Positions 487 to 15,091 of a stretch of 64,000 nt of DNA are shown piece by piece; position 1 is the first letter of the stretch, and the number at the start of each line of letters is the position of its first letter. A program made the position numbers and the translations under genes. The stretch comes from Podarcis liolepis (taxonomy: Eukaryota), in assembly GCA_965112155.1 (NCBI GenBank), contig OZ218108.1. One strand, 5' to 3'. Under the pieces are notes generated by a model. That model saw nothing but the letters and a program-made list of their open reading frames with translations, made no database searches and was not told the DNA's origin.

Positions 487-878
487 GTTGAGTGACTTGT
501 AACATTTTAGGTAGCTGCTCATTGACATTTTTAATTTGCAATTCCTGTTCTTAACAGAAGCTTATAAATAACACACCATATATCACTTTATAGTATACAT
601 AACACTGGTATACATGTTTCATGCTCTCCTACCCTTACAACCCTACTATTTAGCTGCAATAATAGTAAAAGAGAGATTCCTAACATTTCGTGTTAATAAA
701 TGGGTTCGTTATGATATTTTAATATGCTTTCTGCATGTGATTCACGATATCATTTGGTCTTTATGAAATGCTCCTTTGCAAGTTTTGTGTTTAAAGCTCT
801 TTTTTCACCCCTCCTGCTCTTTCCTTTTTTTCTTTGCCCTTCTGTCCTTCTTATATTTTCCCCCTCCACACGTATCAG

Positions 879-3800
879 ACCAGGATCTTTAGTTAGCAAT
901 GGGAAAGTCAGGATCATTCCATTTGATTACGAAGTTGGCCAAGAACAGGAAGAGTGTGAAGAGAACTATGAGGAATTAGGCAAACAGTTAATAGAAGATT
1001 TTTTAGAAAAAAGTCACAGGACTAGAAGTTCACAGGGACGAAGGAGCCCGAGGCTCTCAAAAAGGGAGAACTTTGGCCATCCAGAAAGAGCAAGACACTC
1101 ACGGAAGGCTTGCCCAGAATCAGGACATCCCGATGTTCCTTGCTATCCAGAGGAATATGACACAATAGACAGGAGAAGAAAGAAGAAGCTGAGATATAAC
1201 AATTTTGAAGAATGCGAGCGAACTGTACTGCAAAGCAGTGGTAACCGGAGATTTTCATCAGGCAGCATTAAAGCAAGAACTGAACATAACCTATATCCTG
1301 ATTATGATGAAACTGAGAAATGGGGCAGCAGCCCCATTGAAAGTGAAGAGCAGTTACCGGAATATCCAGTTCTGCGTCCATACAAGAATGGCCTTCTAGT
1401 CAAGAGTGGCAAGTTGTCCGTTAACCAACGCGCAAAGCATGACTCAGGATCAGTCCATTTTGATGGTGAAAATGAGATCCATTCAGAACAGCCAGCTCAC
1501 TCTTTTGTGCCATTGGGTGCCCTTAAAGAGTTTGGCAGCTGTTCATCCAGCATACTCCTGTACTCCCCAGTTTCAGATGATGATGATGATGAAATGGAAG
1601 AAATAGCAATACTTTCCCAAGCATGGCGTGAATCCAGTGTGCGCCATGTTGGAGACCTTACTGACGCCCATACTGGAAGTGCCATATCCCTGTTACCAAG
1701 GGACAAAAACTCACATAGGATGAGAGGAGGAAAGCACGGCTTTCTTAAGCAAGACTTGACCCTCTCTCCTGTTGAAGAGCCAACGGAAGAATACGTGGAC
1801 ACAATGGATGAACTGCAGTGCTTAGTTGAAACTGTGTCTGAATACTTAGCTGAAAAAGAGGAGGAGATTAGCAAATTTGAAACCCTTCCTGCGAGCAAAA
1901 ACGCAAGCGATGGTCCCAAACTGGCCGGTGCTGATAAGCTGGTGGAGGAAAGTGCCTCTTTGGAACAGGCAAAGCCAGCCGCTTCTGCCGCAGAGGAGAG
2001 CGAGGGCAGCAAAGGCATAACAGAGGCACTGCCAGACTTGTCTGGGGTGAAGAACACGGTCAGCTCCTTATTTAGTTCTTTCACCGAAAAAGTGGGCTCA
2101 GGAACAAAGCACTTAACAGCCTCAGTTGAAAAACTTGTATCTCCCACACCAGAGAAACCTGAAGCCCCTGGTCAACCCGAGGGAGGCATCACAAGTCTGT
2201 TTTCAAGTAAGCCTAAGTCTGAGGGTGCCTCTCCAGAACTGAAAGCAGAAAGCAAATCGGATGCCAGGTTGCCCACGGCAACTTCCCCTTCTGTGACCCA
2301 GAGTAGCCGTGAGCGAGAAGCCGGTGATGCCAAGGCCAGCATCCCAGAAAAGACGGCGGGAGACAACAAGGCTCCTCCAAGTGTCCAGGATGCTTCAGCA
2401 AACGCTGCTCCGCCCCCTTCTCTGGACCCCAGCTCAGTCGTGAACTCCGTCTTAGGCATCTTCAACCCTTTGAAAATCTTCTCCGAAAAGGAAGCACCGA
2501 AAAAAGAGACTGCAAAACAGGAGGAGGCTGTGAAGGTGGAAGCCACGCATGCCAGTGCTTCTGAAGCCAAGGCAGGTGGGAAGGAAGCTGAAGGCAACGC
2601 GACAAAACCCACCAACGTTGCGCCTCCCGAAATGAGCAAGAGCGAGGCAGAAGCGAGCGCAAGCAGCGGCCCCGTCTCCTCCATCTTTGGCAAGCTGTCG
2701 AGCTCCGTTAGTTCTTTTAGCTTGAAAGCCAGTTTTGAGAGTCTGGCTGTTCCCAAGCAGCCAAGTGGGCCGCAGAAGGCTTTTGATGCGCTGCCGCAGG
2801 CCACAAGTCAGCCAGATAAAGTTGTTAAAGAACACCCAGACATGCCAAGAAATCCACAACCTGCAGGGAAAGTGCCAGAAAACAAGCCAAGTGAAGCCAA
2901 GAAGGAGACTGGTACCGCTCCGCCGTTGGAGCAGGGGGAACCATCTGAGAGCTTTTTCAGCCCACTTAAGAAATCCTTCAGCCAGTTGCTGCTCCCTTCT
3001 TCTGCTACCGAAACTGTGCCAAAGGAGCCACCACCGGGCTTGGGGAAAAGTCACCGTTCTGAAGATGATGTCAGGAAAACAAGCTCCGCAAGCAGCGAAC
3101 CCAACTTCCCTTTCACCGGTAAGCTCCAGATTCCCTTTTTGAGCGGTTTTGGCTTTTCAGACAAACCACCGCAGGACAACAAAGAGAAGCCAGGAATTTT
3201 CACTTCATTCTTGAAAGCTGCTTCTGTGGAAAACCTGACAGCTTCAAAAGATCAAACTGCCCCACCAAGTTTTAGTGGAAAGCCACCAAATGCTGAAGAG
3301 GGTCACAAAAGCAGCAACGTGGAAGCTGCCAAAATGGACTCGTCAAAGTCTCAGGCAGTTCCCGAGGCACCGCAGAGAAAAGAGGAGCCGACGAGGAAGA
3401 AAGAAACCGGTAAAGAAGATGGTCTGGGTGCACCAAAACATGGAGATAAAGACCAGGGTGCCTCAGACACTTCAAAAATTGCCCACATGGATCATGATCC
3501 CAAACGCATGGGTGCTCTGGACCACAAGGATTCCAAATGCAGGGGGGAGCTGGCAGCCCCCACAAAAGAACCTGACTTAAATACCACAGCAGGACAGCCA
3601 GTGGTTCCTGGTGGAATCAGAGAGGACCAGGTAATGGATGATACTCCGAAGAAGGCCCCACAGCCAGGGCAGGGGTTGCTCTCGGGCCTCTTCCGGCGGG
3701 CGTCTTCAGACCACATAACCCACACGGAAGAGTCAAATGCTAAAAATGAAACGGACAGCCAGAAGAGCAGATCAGCCGGCTTACTTTCTGGATTATTTAG

Positions 3801-6800
3801 GTTTGCTTCAAGTGAAAACCTGACCGAAAGTATGCCAGATAAGGCAAAATCAGGCTCTCTGGGCATAATGAAGTTTTTTGAGAGGAGCGAAGAGACTAGT
3901 TCTGGTGACAAGTCCATTGGCTCACATGTGACTCCTGGTCCCCAAGAAAGCACTGGGGGGAAACCGGAGACGGGCAGCTTCATAAAGAACTTCATGCAGA
4001 GGCCAAAAGAAAAAGCGGAGGAGGCAGTGACTGAGACTGCGAAGGCGAATGGTCATTTTCCTCACCCAGAACTGAGCAAAAGGGACAACGGACATGGTCC
4101 CGTCCCTTGGAACCCCCCCTCTCAGAATGCTTTAAGCTCACAGTCAAAGATACAAGACTTATCGGGGCAGCCAACTCTTTATAGACAACCTACGGATTCC
4201 AATATTTATCAAGCAGTTCTCAACGAAAGGTCAAATGAATTTCTCAATTCCTCTTTGCTGAATGCTAAATTGTATGGCCACTCAGAGCAGCATCTTGCTC
4301 TTGAGGAAACAAGGAGCCACTCTAGCTTTGACTGGGAATATGATGCAGGAGCATTTTCTCTCAGTGCCCACCAGGTTTCCTTGCCCGTTTACTACGTCTT
4401 GCAGCAGAATTCTGTCCCATTGGCTGAGTTTCTGGAATGGCCAGACTCTAGTGATGCCGTAGTGAACTTGTGTAAAAAAGATGGCAATGCCAATGTCGTG
4501 GATTGGAGGTCAAATGCCAGTTTTGATGCCCTGAGCATGGATTTCAGTGTCATGTCACACGAATCGTTTGATCAGTTAGACTTACAAGATTTAGGTCTAG
4601 AAGAAACGGAAATGTGGGCAACGCATTCTCTGAATGGAAACCTTCCTCCATTTGATGACTGCAGCTATATTTTGGAAGAGATGCCCATGGACTTGAGCTA
4701 TTCGTCGGCATGTGATGGCAATATGTGGACCTTAATTGATCAGGAGTCCTTGAGCTTGGAGGGCAGTTTTGTCTATTCATCTTATAGCCATGAGTACCAG
4801 GACTGGCTGGTGCTGCTTGAGAAGGGCGTGTGGTGGCCGTCGGAAGATGGCGATTGTGGATATTACATGTACAGGGATGGTCAGTTTGTTTATTCCCTGC
4901 TCACCGACCCCACTGGGCAGTATGTCTACATTTGCACTCCTGACACTTACACCTACCCAGACTACTGGGATTATAATTATCCGCAGAGCATTTTGCAGAG
5001 CACTGTCTTGGAAGATGACATGATTGCCGTTTGCGGTTTCAAAGTGCCTCTTGGTAATGAAGACGAGTTATTCTGGTTTGCTGAAGAGGAGCAATTGGAT
5101 AATTACTCTGTAAACAAACCACTTGATTTGTCTGTAGCTCTGCAGAGAAGTGATCAACTTATGAACATGAATTTAGAGACCTTTTCGCAGATGTTTGAGG
5201 AGTCCATTTATTACCAGAGAGAGCAGCCTTTAGACTTTTCAGGATACAAACTTCAAAAACTCAAAGTAGACTTTAGGCCTGAGAATGACATGGAGTGGCA
5301 CTCAGAAGAGCCTCCCCTGACCCTTGACCTTAGAGTTCACTCCAGGGTGGCTTCCAGTGGGAGGCTAAAAGATGATGCTCTACCCAAACATCCGGACAGG
5401 ACCCCTGCTGTGACAGTTTCCGAAAGTGGACAGTCAAGACGGTTTGGTTTCCATATATTCCAGTCTTCTGCTAAGCCTGAGCCTTCATCGGCATCTCAGA
5501 CTGTCACAGAAGTCAAAACCACTGAAGAAGATAAAAAGCCACCTCTGAATAAAGTCGCATCTTTATTCTCTGCTTTGGGTGGCCTGATGGGTAAGGGTAT
5601 GGAAGCGCATGAGACAGTGGAAGACACGGCTGTGAAGAAAGGAGAACCGGTGGTGTTGGGACACAAAAACGATGCTCTTCCAGCTTCGCCACCCAGGAAA
5701 ACAGGAGAGGATATGCAAAACCAGCAGCACACTGAGCGTGAACAAGAGAGAAAAGAGAGAGGCAGATTAGTTAAGTCTGTTAGGGATGAAAAGCCAGTGA
5801 TTTCTCAGAAAAAGCCTCAGCTGGTGAGGTCTTCCTCTCAGCTAAGCCAGGGTCCCTTGGACAGCAAGACCAGTCAGCTGGATAAGAGTGTTAAGCCTGC
5901 TCCCCTCCCAAGTCAACAAAAACCCAAAGTGGGCGAGGATGAACCCAAGAAAACCCAGCCAGCCCCCAGCCAAGCGCCCACGGAGGCCGAGGGCACATTG
6001 TTTAAAAGTGCTCTCAAGATTCTCAGCCTGGGAGAAGACTCCTCCACACCTGCAGCCGCCAATAAAAGTCAAGGCCCCGGGTTCTTTGATTTCTTTAAAA
6101 CGCAGGTCAACAAAGCCCCACAGCCACCACCAGCACCCCAACCAAATCTGACGAAAAATGAAGCCGAGAAGAAAATGCCTCAGGAGAAAGTGGAGCCCCC
6201 AGGCATTTCATCATTCTTTGGTTCCATAGGGGATCTTTTCAAAGTTGATGCAGCCCCTGCCCCACCAAGTGCCGCTGCTCCACCAAAGAGTGGAACCCAC
6301 ACCTCCCTGAAACCGAATGACAACGCGGAGCAGCGGAGCAGAGAGCCAAGTAAGAGCAGCACTCCTGCCCCTCGAATCCCCGTGGAGCAGGCTCGTGGGG
6401 AAGCTGCCCAGAAGCCCACAGTCCCTAAGGAAGAACAGCATGGGAAAGTAGGCAAGGAAGCTGCTCCAGTGAAGAAGGAGGACATCCCCACCGCAGAGAA
6501 TGCGGAACCCAAGCCTCCCATGCAGGCAGGCCCTCGAATGGACCAAGCAAATCGCTCTCCAGGGCAGCATGGCCACGGACCAGCTGTTGCAGCGGGACCG
6601 CAAGGCCATGCAGGAGCCATGCCTGGTAAAACTCAGCCAGGAAAAGCCAGCCAGCCAGCCAGGGATTCTGGGTTTAGCCTCCCTTTTGGCTTGTCGCAGG
6701 CAGCACCTTCGAAGCCTCCGCAGGGACCGCAGCCGGCTGGCAAGAGCATCTTCTCCTCCTTCTTCGGTGCCCCAGAGAAAGCCCCTGCCCCAGCTCCAGC

Positions 6801-9695
6801 AGCTCCTAATGCCAAGCCCCCGGAAGCAGAGGGTCTGTTCAAGATGCCTTCTTTCTTTTCCGGAGGGCCCACCGCAAAGAAGAACGTGCCTCAGAGCAGC
6901 TCCAGCTTCAGCTTTTTCAACCTGCCCTCCTTCCTGGATGACAAGCCACCGGCAGCTGCTCCTGACAAGGGGAATATTGCAAAGCCACCTCAGCAGCAGG
7001 CAAGCAACCTGGGAAGGCCGCCTCAGCAGCAAGCAGGCGCAAAGCCATCTATGAAGCAGTGTGTTTCTGTTGACTCTGGCATTGGACTTGCCAGACAGCA
7101 GGGCTTGAAGGATAAAGAGGCAGCGGCTGGTGTTATAGAAGCAGTACTTGGAAAGCAAGAGGCTATTGGCCCGGAGCACAAGGCAAGTGAGCTAAAAACT
7201 CCTGCGGCTGAGCATGCTGCGGCAAGTGCTTCAGAAGCGAAAAATGAGGTAGAGATACCTTTTGTGGCCAGTAAACCTCCTGATGATGGTACAGATAGGG
7301 AAGACCACTCAGTCTGTCCTGATCCTGGCTCTCAGGTCCCTACGCTGCAGGAAGACGTTCCACCTTCCCTTCCGGAGATTCCACAACCAGAGGAGCAGCT
7401 GCAAGACAAGGCAGAAAAGAGTGATGGTATTGTGGTGTCCTCTGAGAAGGAATTTGTTCCTTCAGGTGGGAACGAGACTTCTGAAAAGGCAGAGCCCGGT
7501 CCAGTTTGTGATGAGACTCCTGTGGCTCTTGAGCCATCTCCTGCTCCTGGAGACCTTTCACAGGAGGTTGTACCTGAAGAAAAACCAAGCCTCCCTGAAG
7601 TCAAGCCCCCAGAACCCAAGCAACCTGATAGGACCCCAAATACTGCGGGAGAGCAGCAGGCTCAGGGCCAAAGGCCTCTCCCTCAAATGGCAGCAGCAGC
7701 ACCTCACCTGCAGGAGAAACCTAAAGAGCCTGAGGCTGACAAATCAGTTCTAGATTCCTCAGTTGAAATGTTTTCCAGCTTCATGACGAAGATGAAACCA
7801 ACCAAAACATTATCTGGCTTCTTTTCCCAGCCTCAGACTCCAGCAGCTCCTAGTGCCCAAAAGAAGAGCACTTCGTTTTTCGGCCTTTCCTCCCTGCCCA
7901 CTGGGCCTCCTCCAGCATTTACAAGTGATCTCTTTGGCATTTTTAAAGGAGCAACAGACGAGACCCTTTCAAAGCCTGCAGGGAAGACCGCAGGCACTTC
8001 AAAACCCCAGGAAATGAGCTCCAGGGCAAAGGAGGCTGTGGGCCCAGTTCCTGGTAAAGGTCTCGCAAAACAAGATAAAGCCTCTAGGGATGAACTTTTA
8101 GGGACAAATGCCGGCAGCATTTTGAAACAACCGGACCAAACCTCTAGGGCTGAACCTACAGAGAAAGAAGCTAGCAGTGACTTGAAACAAGACGCCCCTT
8201 CTGCTTTAGCAGATGAGAGTTTGGGAAAAGAATGTACAGCAGAATTGGAAGCTGAAAACAGTGGAAGACCTGAACATGGTCTGGAACCCTCCCTTAATGC
8301 TTCAGAAACTTTAGACTCAAGTAGGGATCAGGGCCCTGAAGTGGTACAGCTGGACACAAACTTACTGGCATCTGATGAAGCAGGGAAGACTGCCCCGTGT
8401 AGTCAAGAGGTACATGATGCAGTTGAGACGGTGCTGCTGCAGGAGAAGAGTGAAGTGCCTGTGGAGCCCTTAGAAAATGATGCTGTCCCTGCTGTTGAAG
8501 AGCAACTGAGCCCGGCAGGAGAAACAGACGTTGGCCAAATGGATTTGGACGGTACATGTGAGCTGGAACCCAAGGTTGGTGAGGAAGATGAACACCTGAA
8601 ACTGTCAGAACTGACGGATACTTCACTAACCACTGAAGAAGTAACTACAAAGAATGAGGCAGATGTAGATATTTGCCCACCAGACACGTTTGGGACCCTG
8701 GAGATGGAACCCAAAGCTGCTGCAGATGAGGCCCGTGACTTGCCCCATCAGGATATGGAAAAGGTCCCTGAAATAAAACCTGATCTTCCTCCTGAGCAGA
8801 AAGAGCCTCTAACCGTCAGCGAAGCAGCTCCAGAAGCTGCTCCCTTGAAAAGCAGTTTGGCTGGTAAGAGCAAGCCAGCCAGTGCTCCTGCAGAGGCCAG
8901 CAGCACCAAGCCCATGTTTGAAATTCCAAGCATGCCCACTTTGCCCAAATTTGGCTTCATGTCTTCTGCAGACAGCAGCAAGCCATTTGGCTCCTTCTTC
9001 TCTGCACAGCCGCCTTCAGCAAGCAAGCCTGCGCCTGAGCCAGGCCTCGTGTCCAGCTTCAACAAGTTTTCCTCAAGTCTCTTTGGTGGAGGAAGTGATG
9101 AGAAAGCAGGTAAAGTAGAGGCCACTTCGGGTGCTGTGTTTGGAAAGAAGCTGGACTTCTCATTTCCGTGGCAGAAAGATGCCAAGGAGGCGGTTCTCAA
9201 GAAGGAACCAGATGTGCCAACACCAAAAGCTTCCTCCAAACAGGAGGTGGCCCCAATTGCTTCATCCAAACTGGATTTGAAGGCACCAGAAGCTGTCTCG
9301 AAAGCCGAGGAACAAGCAGTGGATGTGACCGGTGCTGATGGGAGCCCAGACCTCTCTGCCTCTGACCAGCCAGCTGACAGTGCTGCTGATTCAGACCTTT
9401 CTTCTAAGCAGCCCGACAGCAAGAGCAACGAATGCTCTGATGGCCCCACGCCTGACATTCCGGTTGTGCCCAACAAGGAGCTGGAGCTTGAGGTCTCCAG
9501 AGAAACGGAAGATGAGCCAAGCACCATTTCCAGTGAGCCTCCTGGGCTCCCTTTGGAGGAACCAGCAGAAGGCGCCACACAGGTTCAGGATGAAGTAGAG
9601 CAGAAGGAAAGTGTCCCTTGTCCAGAAACGGAAACACTTGCTACTGGACTGCAGCCAGCGGAGCAGAGTAGCCCTGAGCCACTCAGGAAGAAAAG
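879..9695 (+). CDS. UNC13B: Giant alternative coding exon (~2939 codons; reads through to TGA at 9715-9717 if the GC donor is not used)
   Basis: Uninterrupted 2997-codon ORF. ~80-nt AG-free pyrimidine tract (797-876) ending in CAG at 876-878 gives a phase-2 acceptor (AG|A CCA GGA = R-P-G), the same phase as the exon at 11778. Candidate phase-2 donor AAG|GCCAGT at 9695/9696 makes the exon 8817 nt (3n). Coding status is strong; the 3' boundary is uncertain. Confidence 0.8.
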
Positions 9696-10211
9696 GCCAG
9701 TAGCCAAAACAGCATGATAAATGGTGCCAACTTGTGAGCCATTTATAATGCAAGTGCCGTAACGGTAGATGCCTGACCTCTTAGATCAGACTCCTCTAGG
9801 CTGTGTTTGGCATTAGTAGTACCCAGTGGTAGGTAGAGTTGTGAACGCTAGTTGCTAGACTGCCCACCCAGAGCCTCTCCTGCCCTTCTCCTTCTCAACT
9901 TCTGGTTTCCTTTGTTCCAAAAGGCTGCAATGACTCTTCCCCTTTTTCTCTCCGTTTGTGCTGTGTCCTTGTGAGTGAGCTGCTTTGAGTATTAGTTTCA
10001 TTAACCTTCCGTAGCCTAATTGTGTGTGAGAGAAAATGACTTGTACCTCTAGATGACATGGTGGGAGGAAGGAAATCGGGGGCTCTCTTGGTTTGCAGAA
10101 AGCTTAGTTAGACAACATACAAGGCATTCACATTTTAAGATGGGAGAGAGACCCAGATGGCAGCAAAAGCTGTTTCAGTGGTTGCGGTTCAGTCACCTGC
10201 AGCATAACTTT

Positions 10212-12074: not shown

Positions 12075-12527
12075 GTAGGTGGTGCACATTGGCCATGGAT
12101 TCCTGGGAGTTGAACTTGAGGTCATTTTTCTGGTTGATCTTGGGAGAGACAAACAGGATATGGGTGTAGTGCCATAGCTGGTTTTGAGTAGTCCACTGGT
12201 GTCTAGGGTCAGAAAGGGTAGGGCAAACATCATTAAATAAATCTAATTAATCCTCCCCTTCATCATCCTCATCATTTTACACCCATCCAGTGACTAATGT
12301 GGTGCATTCCTTACAGGGTTCTCTACCACAGTCCCTGTTGGCCACACTTTCTGTTCTTTCCATGCCATTCTCTGTGTTTTGCTGGCCATCCCAGGTCTCT
12401 TGGGGCCAACTGTTCTCAGCGTTTGTTCCCACCATTACAATAAAAGCTTCTTTTCATGTGTTGAGTTTCATGAGACTGCTCTTGAGTTTCCAGCACTCAT
12501 TTTTTCCTTGTTTTTCTTTTTTGCAAG

Positions 12528-12618
12528 TCACCTTGACGAAAATGAACTTCTCCTTCTTCCCGCTGCAAGAGCCCGCTGGATCCGAGCCATTAATAAAGTG
12601 CGGCTTCAATTTGAAGAG
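12528..12618 (+). CDS. UNC13B: Exon: calmodulin-binding helix (ARARWIRAINKVRLQFEE)
   Basis: Long T-rich tract + AAG acceptor, GAG|gtaggg donor; 91 nt, phase 2-0; Munc13-1/ubMunc13-2 CaM motif with anchor Trp. Confidence 0.9.
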
Positions 12619-13997
12619 GTAGGGCCCGCGAAATGTCCCTTCCCCCATCCTTCCACCTGTGTCTGTGCTTGTAAACCTTGCCATGACTGTTGTCTGAAGG
12701 TTCCTTTGCTTGTCTAAGGGAGACACCGTTCTGGGGCAACTGCACAAATGGTGCATGTTCCTCTCTGGTACCAACAACTTGCTGAAGTTGACTGTGGTGG
12801 GCTTAATTTGTTGACCCCACGGCAGAGGGGTGCAGAACTTGTGCCCCACCAGATTTTGTTGGACTCTCTCCTCAGCCCCAACAGCCAACAGGGCTGGGAT
12901 TGGGGCGAAGTTGGAGCTCAGCGACATCTGGGGGCACCAAGTTGGCTACCTGTGTTGTGTAGAAGAACCAGAATTATTTATGGAAGTGTTGCGTTGACAT
13001 CACTGTTCCTGTGTCTGTAGTTTGTCTTCTGAGGCCCTTCTCTATGTTCCCTTTCCCCAAAAGGTTTGGAGGGTGACAACACAAGAAAGGGCCTTTTTTG
13101 TCGTGCCCCCCCGTTTGTGGAATGCTCTCTCCAGATGCTTTCCCAACCCGTTGTGGGTGTGTGGGAGAGGAGACCCTTCCATGAACTACTGTGCTGCTCC
13201 TGGCGGCCTCCCAAGAGCACCCAGAAGCCGAGTGTTGTCTGAACAGGCCGAAGCAGAGAGTGGCAGCAGGTTCCCTCTCTGCCCCGTGTTGTTGTTGTCT
13301 TGTGCCATTTGGATGCTGCCCTGGCCAGCGGAAGGCCATTGATGTGCCCCGAATCAAAATAGGCTCTCATGTTTGCAACCTTGCCGTTTTAGATGGATCA
13401 GAATTTACACAATGTCACCGGGCTCTTCTGCGAGTGGGCTTAGCATTGCAACTGTGTTGTTGAGGTATCACAAAAGGGTCCTTGGCAGCAATGATATTTT
13501 TCATGGAAAGGGGAAATCTGAGCTAAATGTGGGGAAAATACGGGGTAGCAGTTTTAGGGGTTTCTTTAAAACAAGAGCATGCAAAAGGAGCCCCTATCTA
13601 ACACTGATGTCAGGCTTTCTTAGCAGTTTCTCATGCAGGGCAGAAACTGTGTTTTGCTACACAGAGTATCAAAACACTTTTTTAATTCTTAAGCAAGTCA
13701 GAAGCCTGTTGAGTTGAATTAAAAGATCCTGACGGGTGTAAGAAATGTGAGATATTTACAAAAAGCCGTCAACCCAAGAGCTTTAACAGAACAACCCGGC
13801 GAGTTTGTCTGTCTTCTGAAAAATGCTGCTTTGAATCATTTAGTAAATTGTTTTGAAAAGTAAAACTCTCAAGAGCACTGGAGGCTTCTGCGCACAAAGA
13901 GAATTGGTGGTGTGTGAACGACAAGCGGCTCTTGATGGCTGCAAGCAGACCCCTCGTGCCTTCAAGTGCCTCCCTCCATCTGCTTTCTTGTGGGGCA

Positions 13998-14197
13998 NNN
14001 NNNNNNNNNNNNNNNNNNNNNNNNNNNNNNNNNNNNNNNNNNNNNNNNNNNNNNNNNNNNNNNNNNNNNNNNNNNNNNNNNNNNNNNNNNNNNNNNNNNN
14101 NNNNNNNNNNNNNNNNNNNNNNNNNNNNNNNNNNNNNNNNNNNNNNNNNNNNNNNNNNNNNNNNNNNNNNNNNNNNNNNNNNNNNNNNNNNNNNNNN
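13998..14197. other. Assembly gap (200 N)
   Basis: Run of exactly 200 N; a round number suggests a scaffolding placeholder of unknown true size. Confidence 0.98.
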
Positions 14198-15012
14198 AGG
14201 TCCAAATCAGTTTGCCACCGAGGGAAAGGAGGCATTGGGCATTGGGCCTGTAGGGCAGCAGACTCTTCTGCTCTCCTGCTGCTGCCCCAATGGGCAGAGG
14301 TGATGGAAATGGTAGCCCAACAGCAGTTGGGGGGCCACAGGTCAGAATCAGATCATTTTGAAGCCCAAACCTGTCTAAGGCTCTCATCCCAAATCCACAG
14401 ATAATCTTCTCCCCCATCTGAGAGAGGGGTCTGGAATGGGAAGGGCTTTCTCCTCCTCCTCGCTGGCTCTCCTGATCAGCAGATGCTTTTCTCTTTTAAA
14501 ATGTAGATTACAGGAGTCTGAAGAGCTTTCCTGTTGTGGCTCTTTGGAGTTCAAAGAGTGTGCTGCCATGATGGCCTGATGAATTCTGACACCTTCCCCA
14601 TTGCTGCTTGCCATGCCTCTTTGGAGGAAAGAAGAGAACAAAACCTGATTTAATTTGTACATGGGATGGATTTGAGCAAGGCGCCCTTGATTTCAGAACT
14701 GTCAGGGGCGCCTGTGCTGTGTAACCTGAACTGACGGGAATAATTCACAGATTTAAAGCCGCACAAAAGCCGCTCGGCATTCAGTCACGTCAAGGTTATT
14801 CCTTGTAGCGTGGAGCATTTCTTGCCTTGTTGAACTGATGTGTTTTTAGGTGTTGGTTTCTCCAGGCCAAGGCAAGATCCTGCTTTGCCCGCGTGATTCT
14901 TAAGTCTGCAGGAGGCCTCACCCGGGTCCCTCAAGAGCATCTGGCTGACAGATTATAACATGTGGCGTGCCATCACTGCTTGCCCTCATTCATTTCCCCC
15001 TTTGCTTTCTAG

Positions 15013-15091
15013 GCCAGCCGGGGGTCTCTATGGCATCGACAGCATGCCTGACCTGCGCAAGAAGAAGCCCACCCCACTCGTCAGTGACCTG
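15013..15091 (+). CDS. UNC13B: Exon: [26 protein letters not shown]
   Basis: tttctag| acceptor, CTG|gtgaga donor; 79 nt, phase 2-0; conserved Munc13 motif. Confidence 0.95.

Follow-up and report, generated by a model that had tools for sequence, protein, structure and literature searches.

A conserved island with PxDLS-type motifs in the giant exon of UNC13B, a plausible ligand of CtBP and RIBEYE

A stretch of 64,000 nucleotides from Podarcis liolepis (GenBank assembly GCA_965112155.1, contig OZ218108.1), which as a whole is called the window in the following, contains a giant coding exon of UNC13B, the gene of the vesicle-priming protein Munc13-2. The middle of this exon encodes an island of 371 residues which carries two canonical PxDLS motifs, the type of peptide by which CtBP and RIBEYE are bound, and three degenerate relatives of them. 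Judged from alignments across jawed vertebrates, all five sites are ancient. On this evidence it is plausible that the island is a PXDLS-bearing segment of a presynaptic scaffold and a ligand of CtBP or RIBEYE. Docking of CtBP-family proteins at the two canonical sites is the single most likely mechanism, and we favour it tentatively, because the motifs are conserved, no burial of them is predicted and the background claims on which the idea was built hold in the literature.

An island of this kind would bear on the physical coupling of the release machinery to the synaptic ribbon and on the role of Munc13-2 at ribbons. Retinal ribbon synapses use ubMunc13-2 as their Munc13 and contain RIBEYE as well (PMC7660176; MINFLUX preprint), and a first-pass annotation of this DNA, which had called ubMunc13-2 the Munc13 of photoreceptor ribbon synapses, agrees with PMC7660176. 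According to work cited in PMC7660176, photoreceptor transmission is hardly altered when Munc13-2 is lost. Two PxDLS motifs of deep conservation, situated in an uncharacterised insert of ~2,950 residues in the Munc13 gene of ribbon synapses, offer a concrete and cheaply testable hypothesis, which if true would provide the first function for a 9-kb exon kept in jawed vertebrates. In the literature searched, interactome and RIBEYE mass spectrometry included, we found nothing that links Munc13-2 to CtBP or PXDLS, and no description of the giant exon, of an isoform of ~4,300-4,700 residues or of the island.

PxDLS-type motifs of the island and their conservation

The giant exon is part of an open reading frame (ORF) of 2997 codons on the + strand, which spans positions 724-9717 of the window according to the ORF list and its translation and is directly followed by stop codons. 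The first-pass annotation had listed seven peptides of this exon as a cluster of PxDLS-type motifs and proposed that they bind CtBP and RIBEYE. By reading the DNA and translating the ORF all seven were found where they had been placed and in the giant frame (Table 1). As a cluster of PxDLS motifs the list holds for two of them: PMDLS (site 1) and PLDLS (site 2) fit the strict CtBP pattern, whereas VVNLC (site 0), PLDFS (site 3), TLDLR (site 4), SMDFS and KVDFR are not canonical.

The chance expectation was estimated from 5000 composition-preserving shuffles. The strict pattern P.DLS occurs twice in the island against 0.025 expected occurrences (P = 2e-4), and three times in the whole exon against 0.15 (P = 6e-4). 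We also used a wider CtBP pattern, P[LVIPME][DENS][LM][VASTRG], which is taken to represent the ELM class LIG_CtBP_PxDLS_1. This pattern is found twice in the island as well, with 0.10 expected (P = 0.003). A "loose" pattern that spans all seven peptides returned P = 0 and was rejected as evidence; it is circular, because it was written after the peptides had been seen.

For the conservation analysis 144 distinct island sequences were excised from every match and aligned. The 144 sequences come from squamates, turtles, birds, marsupials, placentals, a salamander, frogs, sturgeon, gar, bowfin, teleosts and a catshark (Scyliorhinus torazame), and the teleosts fall into two paralogue clades, one of which is named unc13bb. 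One Logan-derived protein with 48 members (P0096) was contained in the first automatic island alignments and was excluded from A2-A4. A maximum-likelihood tree under a gamma model provided the site rates, and weighted column entropy served as the second measure.

Five of the seven sites (0, 1, 2, 3 and 4) are local peaks of conservation from catshark to mammals. Their rates lie between 0.32 and 0.61 compared to 0.8-1.7 in the flanks, the weighted entropy ranks the sites alike, and the D/N-L/F-S triads evolve at the floor rate of the gamma model (0.26-0.30). In the unaligned islands at least two matches to the CtBP pattern are present in 121 of the 144 sequences and at least one in 143, while shuffled sequences give 0.076 per island. 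The first-pass annotation had set conservation above the flanks as a test for its motifs, with amniotes in mind; five of them are conserved in this way beyond amniotes, as far as cartilaginous fish, and SMDFS and KVDFR are not.

The two canonical sites are conserved in the manner of the CtBP consensus. Site 1 reads P[MIVL]DL[STR] within a longer E-E-x-P-x-D-L-S-Y-S-S context, fits the CtBP pattern in 120 of the 144 sequences and has a rate of 0.61 against 1.37 in its flanks; the catshark has PMDLS. Site 2 is the most conserved pentapeptide outside the core fold described below (rate 0.32, flanks 0.89) and fits the pattern in 136 of 144 sequences as counted, with PVDLS, PMDLT, PINLT, PEDLT, PMNLT and PLDLA as variants; four apparent misses are frog PLDLA peptides that were cut by an alignment gap, and PLDLA matches the pattern too. 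The proline of site 2 is invariant in four independent alignments, and its aspartate and leucine are conserved to at least 90%. At both sites P, D and L vary hardly or not at all, and the substitutions stay within the tolerated set, which is M, I, V, L or E at position 2, N for D, and T, A or R for S.

In two teleost clades site 1 has taken different courses. In the clade P0143-P0164, giant UNC13B-like proteins of up to ~6,000 residues, it is doubled (KKGPVDLT....RGAMDLSRSA, aligned to ~4650-4700 of the window), and the first copy, PVDLT, is identical to the RIBEYE-binding motif of Piccolo. In the other, unc13bb-like clade it is degenerate ([AP]PNLSYSA).

The remaining three conserved sites deviate from the consensus. 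Site 0 is [VA][VILM]N[LF][CST] across the orthologues, with ALNLS, ALDLS or PLNLS in fish, and fits the CtBP pattern in 2 of 144 sequences; its rate is 0.51 against 1.32, and its weighted conservation 0.63 against 0.34. Site 3, P[LV]DF[ST] within Q-P-L-D-F-S-x-Y, is PLDFS in 98 of the sequences and fits the pattern in a single one (1/144). Its aspartate and phenylalanine are conserved to at least 90% (rate 0.43, flanks 0.80). At site 4, x[LFAIV]DL[RTS], the same is true for aspartate and leucine, and the rate of 0.48 against 1.70 is the sharpest local contrast among the sites.

SMDFS is replaced by SVIWC or GVDCN in mammals, is gapped in teleosts and evolves no slower than its flanks (1.29 against 1.12). 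KVDFR becomes KGDFR, KVALE and others in mammals (1.12 against 1.14). A third strict PxDLS of the exon, PGDLS at 7546, reads PGDFS even in Zootoca and cannot be aligned further out; it is probably a chance match. For lack of conservation none of these three peptides was retained as a functional site, and on the alignments they are noise.

That the whole cluster consists of chance peptides in a long low-complexity exon, or that the exon is not coding at all, is exceedingly improbable. This idea would account for the behaviour of PGDLS, SMDFS and KVDFR, which is that of random matches, and for the wider CtBP pattern over the whole exon, where the shuffles show no enrichment (three matches against 1.1 expected, P = 0.10). 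However, an open frame of ~9 kb is preserved across gnathostomes, five sites have stayed conserved over more than 400 million years, evolving at the floor rate of the gamma model, and the excess of strict PxDLS motifs in the island is the one given above. For the five conserved sites chance is excluded by the alignments.

Table 1. Positions of the motifs, the predicted structural elements and the other conserved blocks in the window
Feature	Position	Strand	Remarks
Giant coding exon of UNC13B (Munc13-2)	879-9714	+	Part of ORF 724-9717; orthologue tblastn, ORF translation
Conserved aromatic and acidic island, ORF residues 1190-1560 (371 residues)	4291-5403	+	Best-conserved part of the giant exon; contains all seven listed peptides
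Site 0, VVNLC	4459-4473	+	Conserved, non-canonical (no Pro)
SMDFS	4534-4548	+	Not conserved
Site 1, PMDLS	4684-4698	+	Canonical PxDLS, conserved
Helix and four-strand beta-meander core, YQDWLVLLEKGVWWPSEDGDCGYYMY..GQYVYICTP	4777-4941	+	Sole confidently predicted fold element
Site 2, PLDLS	5119-5133	+	Perfect E1A-type PxDLS, conserved
Linker between sites 2 and 3, SVALQRSDQLMNMNLETFSQMFEESIYYQRE	5131-5223	+	Conserved; helical prediction of low confidence
Site 3, PLDFS	5227-5241	+	Conserved; Phe instead of canonical Leu
KVDFR	5263-5277	+	Weakly conserved
Site 4, TLDLR	5320-5334	+	Conserved, non-canonical (no Pro at position 1)
PGDLS, third strict PxDLS of the exon	7546-7560	+	Not conserved; outside the first-pass range 4441-5340
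Block YPEEYDTIDRRRKKK	1144-1188	+	Conserved; giant exon
Block LRPYKNGLLVK	1372-1404	+	Conserved; giant exon
Block LSPVEEPxEEYVDxMDELQCLVETVSEYLAEKEEEISK	1762-1875	+	38 residues, acidic, helix-like; giant exon
Block GVKNxxSLFSSxTEKVGSGxK	2044-2139	+	Conserved; giant exon
Block FFSPLKKSFS	2953-2991	+	Conserved; giant exon
GLLSGLFR, two copies	3673-3696, 3778-3801	+	Giant exon
Block KSVLDSSxE..S.F	7741-7782	+	Conserved; giant exon
Block FGxKLDFSFPWQK	9139-9180	+	Conserved; near the exon end

Structure and composition of the island

AlphaFold2 was run twice, with the island and 48 aligned orthologues, and with the last 271 residues of the island and an alignment of 44 rows. The core listed in Table 1 reaches a predicted local distance difference test score (pLDDT) of 75-78 in the first and of 67-75 in the second run. 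It holds most of the invariant residues of the island (columns of G, W, L, T, D and Y), with the consensus WWPSEDGDCGYYxYxDGQYIYSLLTDxTGQYVY, and has the appearance of a small, so far unrecognised domain that is confined to gnathostome UNC13B. When the AlphaFold2 model was compared to 48,161 chains, the best Z was 3.7, by which no fold was assigned; a PDB sequence search found nothing at E values up to 1, and the best score of the island in the ESM Atlas, 0.76, is meaningless. In an exhaustive profile-free search of 1.84 billion proteins the island was present in only 65 cluster representatives, all of them giant UNC13B-like proteins, and therefore there is no paralogous family to lend a function.

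All motifs are located outside the core, at a pLDDT below 50 in both runs and with no confident fold around them; burial in a predicted fold, which the first-pass annotation had named as a result against its idea, is not seen in either run. A helix is predicted between sites 2 and 3, at island residues 281-311, again with a pLDDT below 50 in both runs. The spacers between sites 0, 1, 2, 3 and 4 comprise 73, 140, 36 and 31 residues, of which the 140-residue one contains the predicted fold. The aspartates of PLDLS and PLDFS stand 36 residues apart almost without exception (interquartile range 36-36, n = 141). Such a fixed spacer fits a structured linker and equally a two-point binding to a partner of fixed geometry.

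Sites 0 and 1 share a pattern that is longer than the motif itself (NLCKKDGNANVVDW at 4465-4506 and DLSYSSACDGNMW at 4690-4728). Common to both are [ND]-L-[CS], 4-6 residues, D-G-N, 2-4 residues and a W, and this is also seen in fish. The likeness suggests an internal duplication of a unit of more than five residues.

Several observations weigh against docking to CtBP. The canonical sites are just two of the five conserved and two of the seven listed peptides, the phenylalanine of site 3 is nearly invariant where CtBP ligands have leucine, sites 0 and 4 lack the proline, and the wider CtBP pattern is, as said, not enriched over the exon. The core common to the five sites, Phi-[DN]-[LF]-[S/T/C/R], hints at a reader other than CtBP or at a structural repeat. 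The composition of the island is a further point against docking: order-promoting residues make up 0.42 of it compared to 0.20-0.24 elsewhere in the exon, W, Y and F together 13.5% compared to 3-5%, and D and E 18% compared to 5% for K and R. Around sites 1 and 2 the order-promoting fraction even rises to 0.49, above the 95th percentile for the ORF, and the pLDDT below 50 was obtained there on shallow alignments. The low pLDDT may merely reflect the depth of these alignments, 44-48 vertebrate sequences. Because the island is aromatic, acidic and order-prone, its disorder is not certain despite the low pLDDT, and for the same compositional reason the motifs may be structural. In addition, conservation extends for ~60 residues past site 2 (PLDLSxALxRSDxxMNMNLETFSQMFEES...QPLDFSxYKLxKxKVD), and a long conserved tract with a fixed 36-residue spacer is more typical of an element that is folded or folds on binding than of linear motifs standing alone. 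Finally, no run on record as RNA contains the island, and two bulk RNA-seq runs of Podarcis liolepis, of which the tissue is unstated and ~12% of each was read, gave 4 and 5 reads over the 5.9 kb from 600 to 6500.

The strongest rival of CtBP docking, and a quite possible one, is a structural or oligomerising domain, or a domain which folds on a partner that has nothing to do with CtBP. The P-x-D-[LF]-S peptides would then mark strand starts, turns or helix entries, and their likeness to CtBP ligands would be incidental. In its favour are an order-prone, aromatic-rich and cysteine-containing composition unlike that of the rest of the exon, a conservation that runs without a break over ~200 residues, with the WWPSEDGDCGYY core at one end and QPLDFSxYKLxKxKVD at the other, the fixed distance between sites 2 and 3, the invariant phenylalanine at site 3 and the missing proline at sites 0 and 4. 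The extended pattern of sites 0 and 1, [ND]L[CS]x4-6 D-G-N x2-4 W, which resembles an internal duplication, and the AlphaFold2 models, with their helix and beta-meander core and tentative helices or strands beside sites 2 and 3, speak for it as well. However, neither of the two AlphaFold2 runs gives a confident fold for the segments that bear the motifs, and no Pfam, PDB-sequence or structural relative was found. The steep drop in rate from the immediate flanks to sites 1 and 2 (1.4 to 0.6 and 0.9 to 0.3) is what linear motifs would show, and the tolerated substitutions track the CtBP consensus closely.

It is distinctly unlikely that the five sites dock a different reader of Phi-[DN]-[LF]-[S/T] by beta-strand addition, either of the SUMO type or regulated by phosphorylation through the Ser/Thr at position 5 and the serine-rich tail of site 1. 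What the five sites have in common is indeed a hydrophobic residue, D/N, L/F and S/T/C/R and not the proline, and the S-Y-S-S run after site 1 is conserved. PIDLS and PLDLS also meet permissive SUMO-interaction patterns (the SIM class of ELM). Against such a reader, no candidate is known, SUMO-interaction motifs usually have three hydrophobic residues of four, with which only VVNLC complies, and the proline that is invariant at site 2 and nearly so at sites 1 and 3 would be unexplained if position 1 were ignored.

Gene models, transcripts and other conserved blocks of the exon

The exon borders were placed by tblastn with the UNC13B models of Zootoca, Anolis and Aquila at about 850/877 to 9714, and at the end of the frame (9690-9720) the translation ...AQTA is followed by TGA TAA. 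The N-terminus with a C2A domain of the ubMunc13-2/Munc13-1 type is encoded upstream of the window and precedes the giant exon in the Zootoca model (tblastn). On the 3' side of the giant exon 22 further exons were found by tblastn between 11776 and 63355, with 75-100% identity to the orthologue models, which code for the C1, C2B and MUN parts. The precomputed Pfam assignments of the orthologue models are PF00168, PF00130 and PF06292, that is C2, C1 and MUN. The gene is UNC13B (Munc13-2), with C2A, C1, C2B and MUN exons within one transcription unit. A protein search with ORF residues 1190-1560 returned 150 matches, essentially all UNC13B models or giant-exon fragments, and the top match, 95% identical, is Zootoca vivipara "protein unc-13 homolog B isoform X1". 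A Pfam scan of the whole giant exon matched no family.

The orthologue gene models, which were used unmodified, are of two kinds (P0001, P0006, P0010, P0041, P0047, P0049 and P0081 are among them). The long ones (~4,300-4,700 residues) contain C2A, the giant exon and then C1-C2B-MUN, and the short ones (~3,000-3,300 residues), present in many species, contain C2A and the giant exon and end right after it. The described UNC13B isoforms, ubMunc13-2 and bMunc13-2, have about 1,600-2,000 residues. By analogy to Piccolino, which is a truncated Piccolo, a form of C2A and giant exon without MUN would be a scaffold and not a priming factor.

One of the models, P0004 of Anolis sagrei (4946 residues), also has a galactosyltransferase domain (PF01762) and is probably a chimeric prediction with a neighbouring gene. 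In the window itself 200 N, an assembly gap or mask, are located at 13998-14197, in the intron between the exons at ~12526-12642 and 14978-15091.

As for transcripts, two small contig runs marked "RNA?" cover the exon, but they are probably DNA because their coverage extends 114 nt into the intron ahead of the acceptor. The Logan contigs of orthologues contain the exon ORF only, and are genomic and not transcripts because of the intronic read-through at the exon start. In the CuffMerge annotation of mouse retina by Murphy et al. 2016, an Unc13b exon of 8.4-9.0 kb is given at chr4:43,169,967-43,178,334/43,178,928 (PMC4991804 S3 Table). The next exon follows after 1.4 kb, an arrangement which matches that at ~879-9714 of the window. 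This annotation possibly attests the giant exon in retina; its source could be reads or the reference annotation. A cassette of 33 nt just upstream of the long mouse exon is included at 0.25-0.33 in wild-type and at 0.04-0.17 in photoreceptor-less Aipl1-/- retina (PMC4991804 S3 Table). The Musashi-dependent photoreceptor-specific Unc13b exon was considered as well and rejected as the giant exon, since it is a cassette of 39 nt which lies close to the 3' terminus of Unc13b.

Apart from the island, further sharply conserved blocks occur inside the otherwise fast-evolving giant exon (Table 1). None of them matched a Pfam family.

Candidate docking to CtBP and RIBEYE and comparison to known ligands

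CtBP2 and RIBEYE bind PXDLS/T peptides in a cleft, which the PVDLT peptide of Piccolo needs for co-localisation, and a RIBEYE with a mutated cleft does not rescue ribbon function (PMC10760060). Piccolino contains seven PXDLS motifs with spacers of ~25 and ~45 residues and bundles RIBEYE-B filaments in a manner that depends on multivalency (bioRxiv 10.64898/2026.04.28.721253). According to the same preprint the clefts stay accessible on the ribbon lattice, ~47 Å and 58-71 Å apart, where ~47 Å is the short distance between neighbouring clefts in the RIBEYE B' sheets, and Bassoon bears PXDLS motifs too. In work cited there, a PXDLS-type motif of Bassoon holds CtBP1 at conventional synapses and anchors ribbons. 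The statement of the first-pass annotation that Bassoon and Piccolo/Piccolino bind CtBP or RIBEYE-B through PXDLS is in line with both papers (PMC10760060; bioRxiv 10.64898/2026.04.28.721253).

Under CtBP docking, the tentatively favoured mechanism, the island would be a protein-interaction module in the central part of the giant exon, of which sites 1 and 2 would dock in the PXDLS-binding cleft of CtBP1, CtBP2 or the B domain of RIBEYE. The degenerate copies VVNLC, PLDFS and TLDLR might add weak contacts, so that avidity would be gained on CtBP dimers or tetramers or on the regular cleft lattice of the RIBEYE ribbon. With the exon spliced behind the C2A N-terminus of the ubMunc13-2 type, a giant Munc13-2 isoform, or a truncated one of C2A and giant exon, would be tied to synaptic ribbons or to an active-zone matrix that contains CtBP1, in a manner that may be likened to Piccolino and Bassoon. 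The motifs, their frame, conservation and substitution pattern and their gene context are shown by the sequences, whereas we infer which partner is bound, the multivalent mode, the tissue and any influence on priming.

The most far-reaching version, in which the giant Munc13-2 isoform is a second multivalent presynaptic ligand of RIBEYE/CtBP beside Piccolino and Bassoon, is rather unlikely. Sites 1 and 2, aided by sites 0, 3 and 4, would fasten the island to the PXDLS clefts of the ribbon or to CtBP1 tetramers, and disordered arms of ~1,100 and ~1,400 residues, rich in Phe motifs, would join the RIM-binding C2A and C1-C2B-MUN to the ribbon. We only infer that the helix between sites 2 and 3 (~30 residues) would span ~45-50 Å, which is near the ~47 Å of the RIBEYE B' clefts. 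Of the multivalent CtBP/RIBEYE ligand which the first-pass annotation had envisaged, the two canonical conserved motifs stand, while three motifs are degenerate, two are not conserved and the island is order-prone. If the partner were CtBP1 and not RIBEYE, the island could couple priming with CtBP1 in conventional synapses, and if the CtBP hypothesis fails, the island is still an unrecognised conserved domain of Munc13-2.

Compared to known CtBP ligands, site 2 is letter for letter the PLDLS of adenovirus E1A. The forms of site 1, PMDLS or PIDLS, match variants of Knirps, RIP140 and FOG. In contrast to E1A and the transcription factors, which recruit nuclear co-repressors, site 2 is part of a cytoplasmic vesicle-priming protein. 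ubMunc13-2 and bMunc13-2 are products of the same gene, and the giant exon, which the described isoforms do not contain, lies between the C2A N-terminus of ubMunc13-2 and the shared C1-C2B-MUN exons.

With Bassoon, an active-zone scaffold, the island shares a PXDLS-type motif; unlike the island, however, Bassoon belongs to another gene family, has no sequence relationship to it, and its interaction has been demonstrated experimentally. The closest parallel is Piccolino/Piccolo. Here, too, giant exons are used alternatively in a presynaptic active-zone protein and several PXDLS-type motifs are conserved, the PVDLT variant of Piccolo recurs at site 1 of teleost paralogues, and the spacers of 36 and 31 residues are within the range of the ~25 and ~45 of Piccolino. 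In contrast, the seven motifs of Piccolino lie in unstructured spacers, and their binding was shown by isothermal titration calorimetry, sedimentation and cell assays. The island has two canonical and three degenerate motifs, a predicted folded core within a gap of 140 residues between sites 1 and 2, and surroundings that are aromatic and acidic and not plainly disordered. Taken as about six or seven canonical motifs with unstructured spacers of ~25-45 residues, an array of the Piccolino type is not found in the island. By analogy the island may act like the Piccolino array, from which it differs in architecture.

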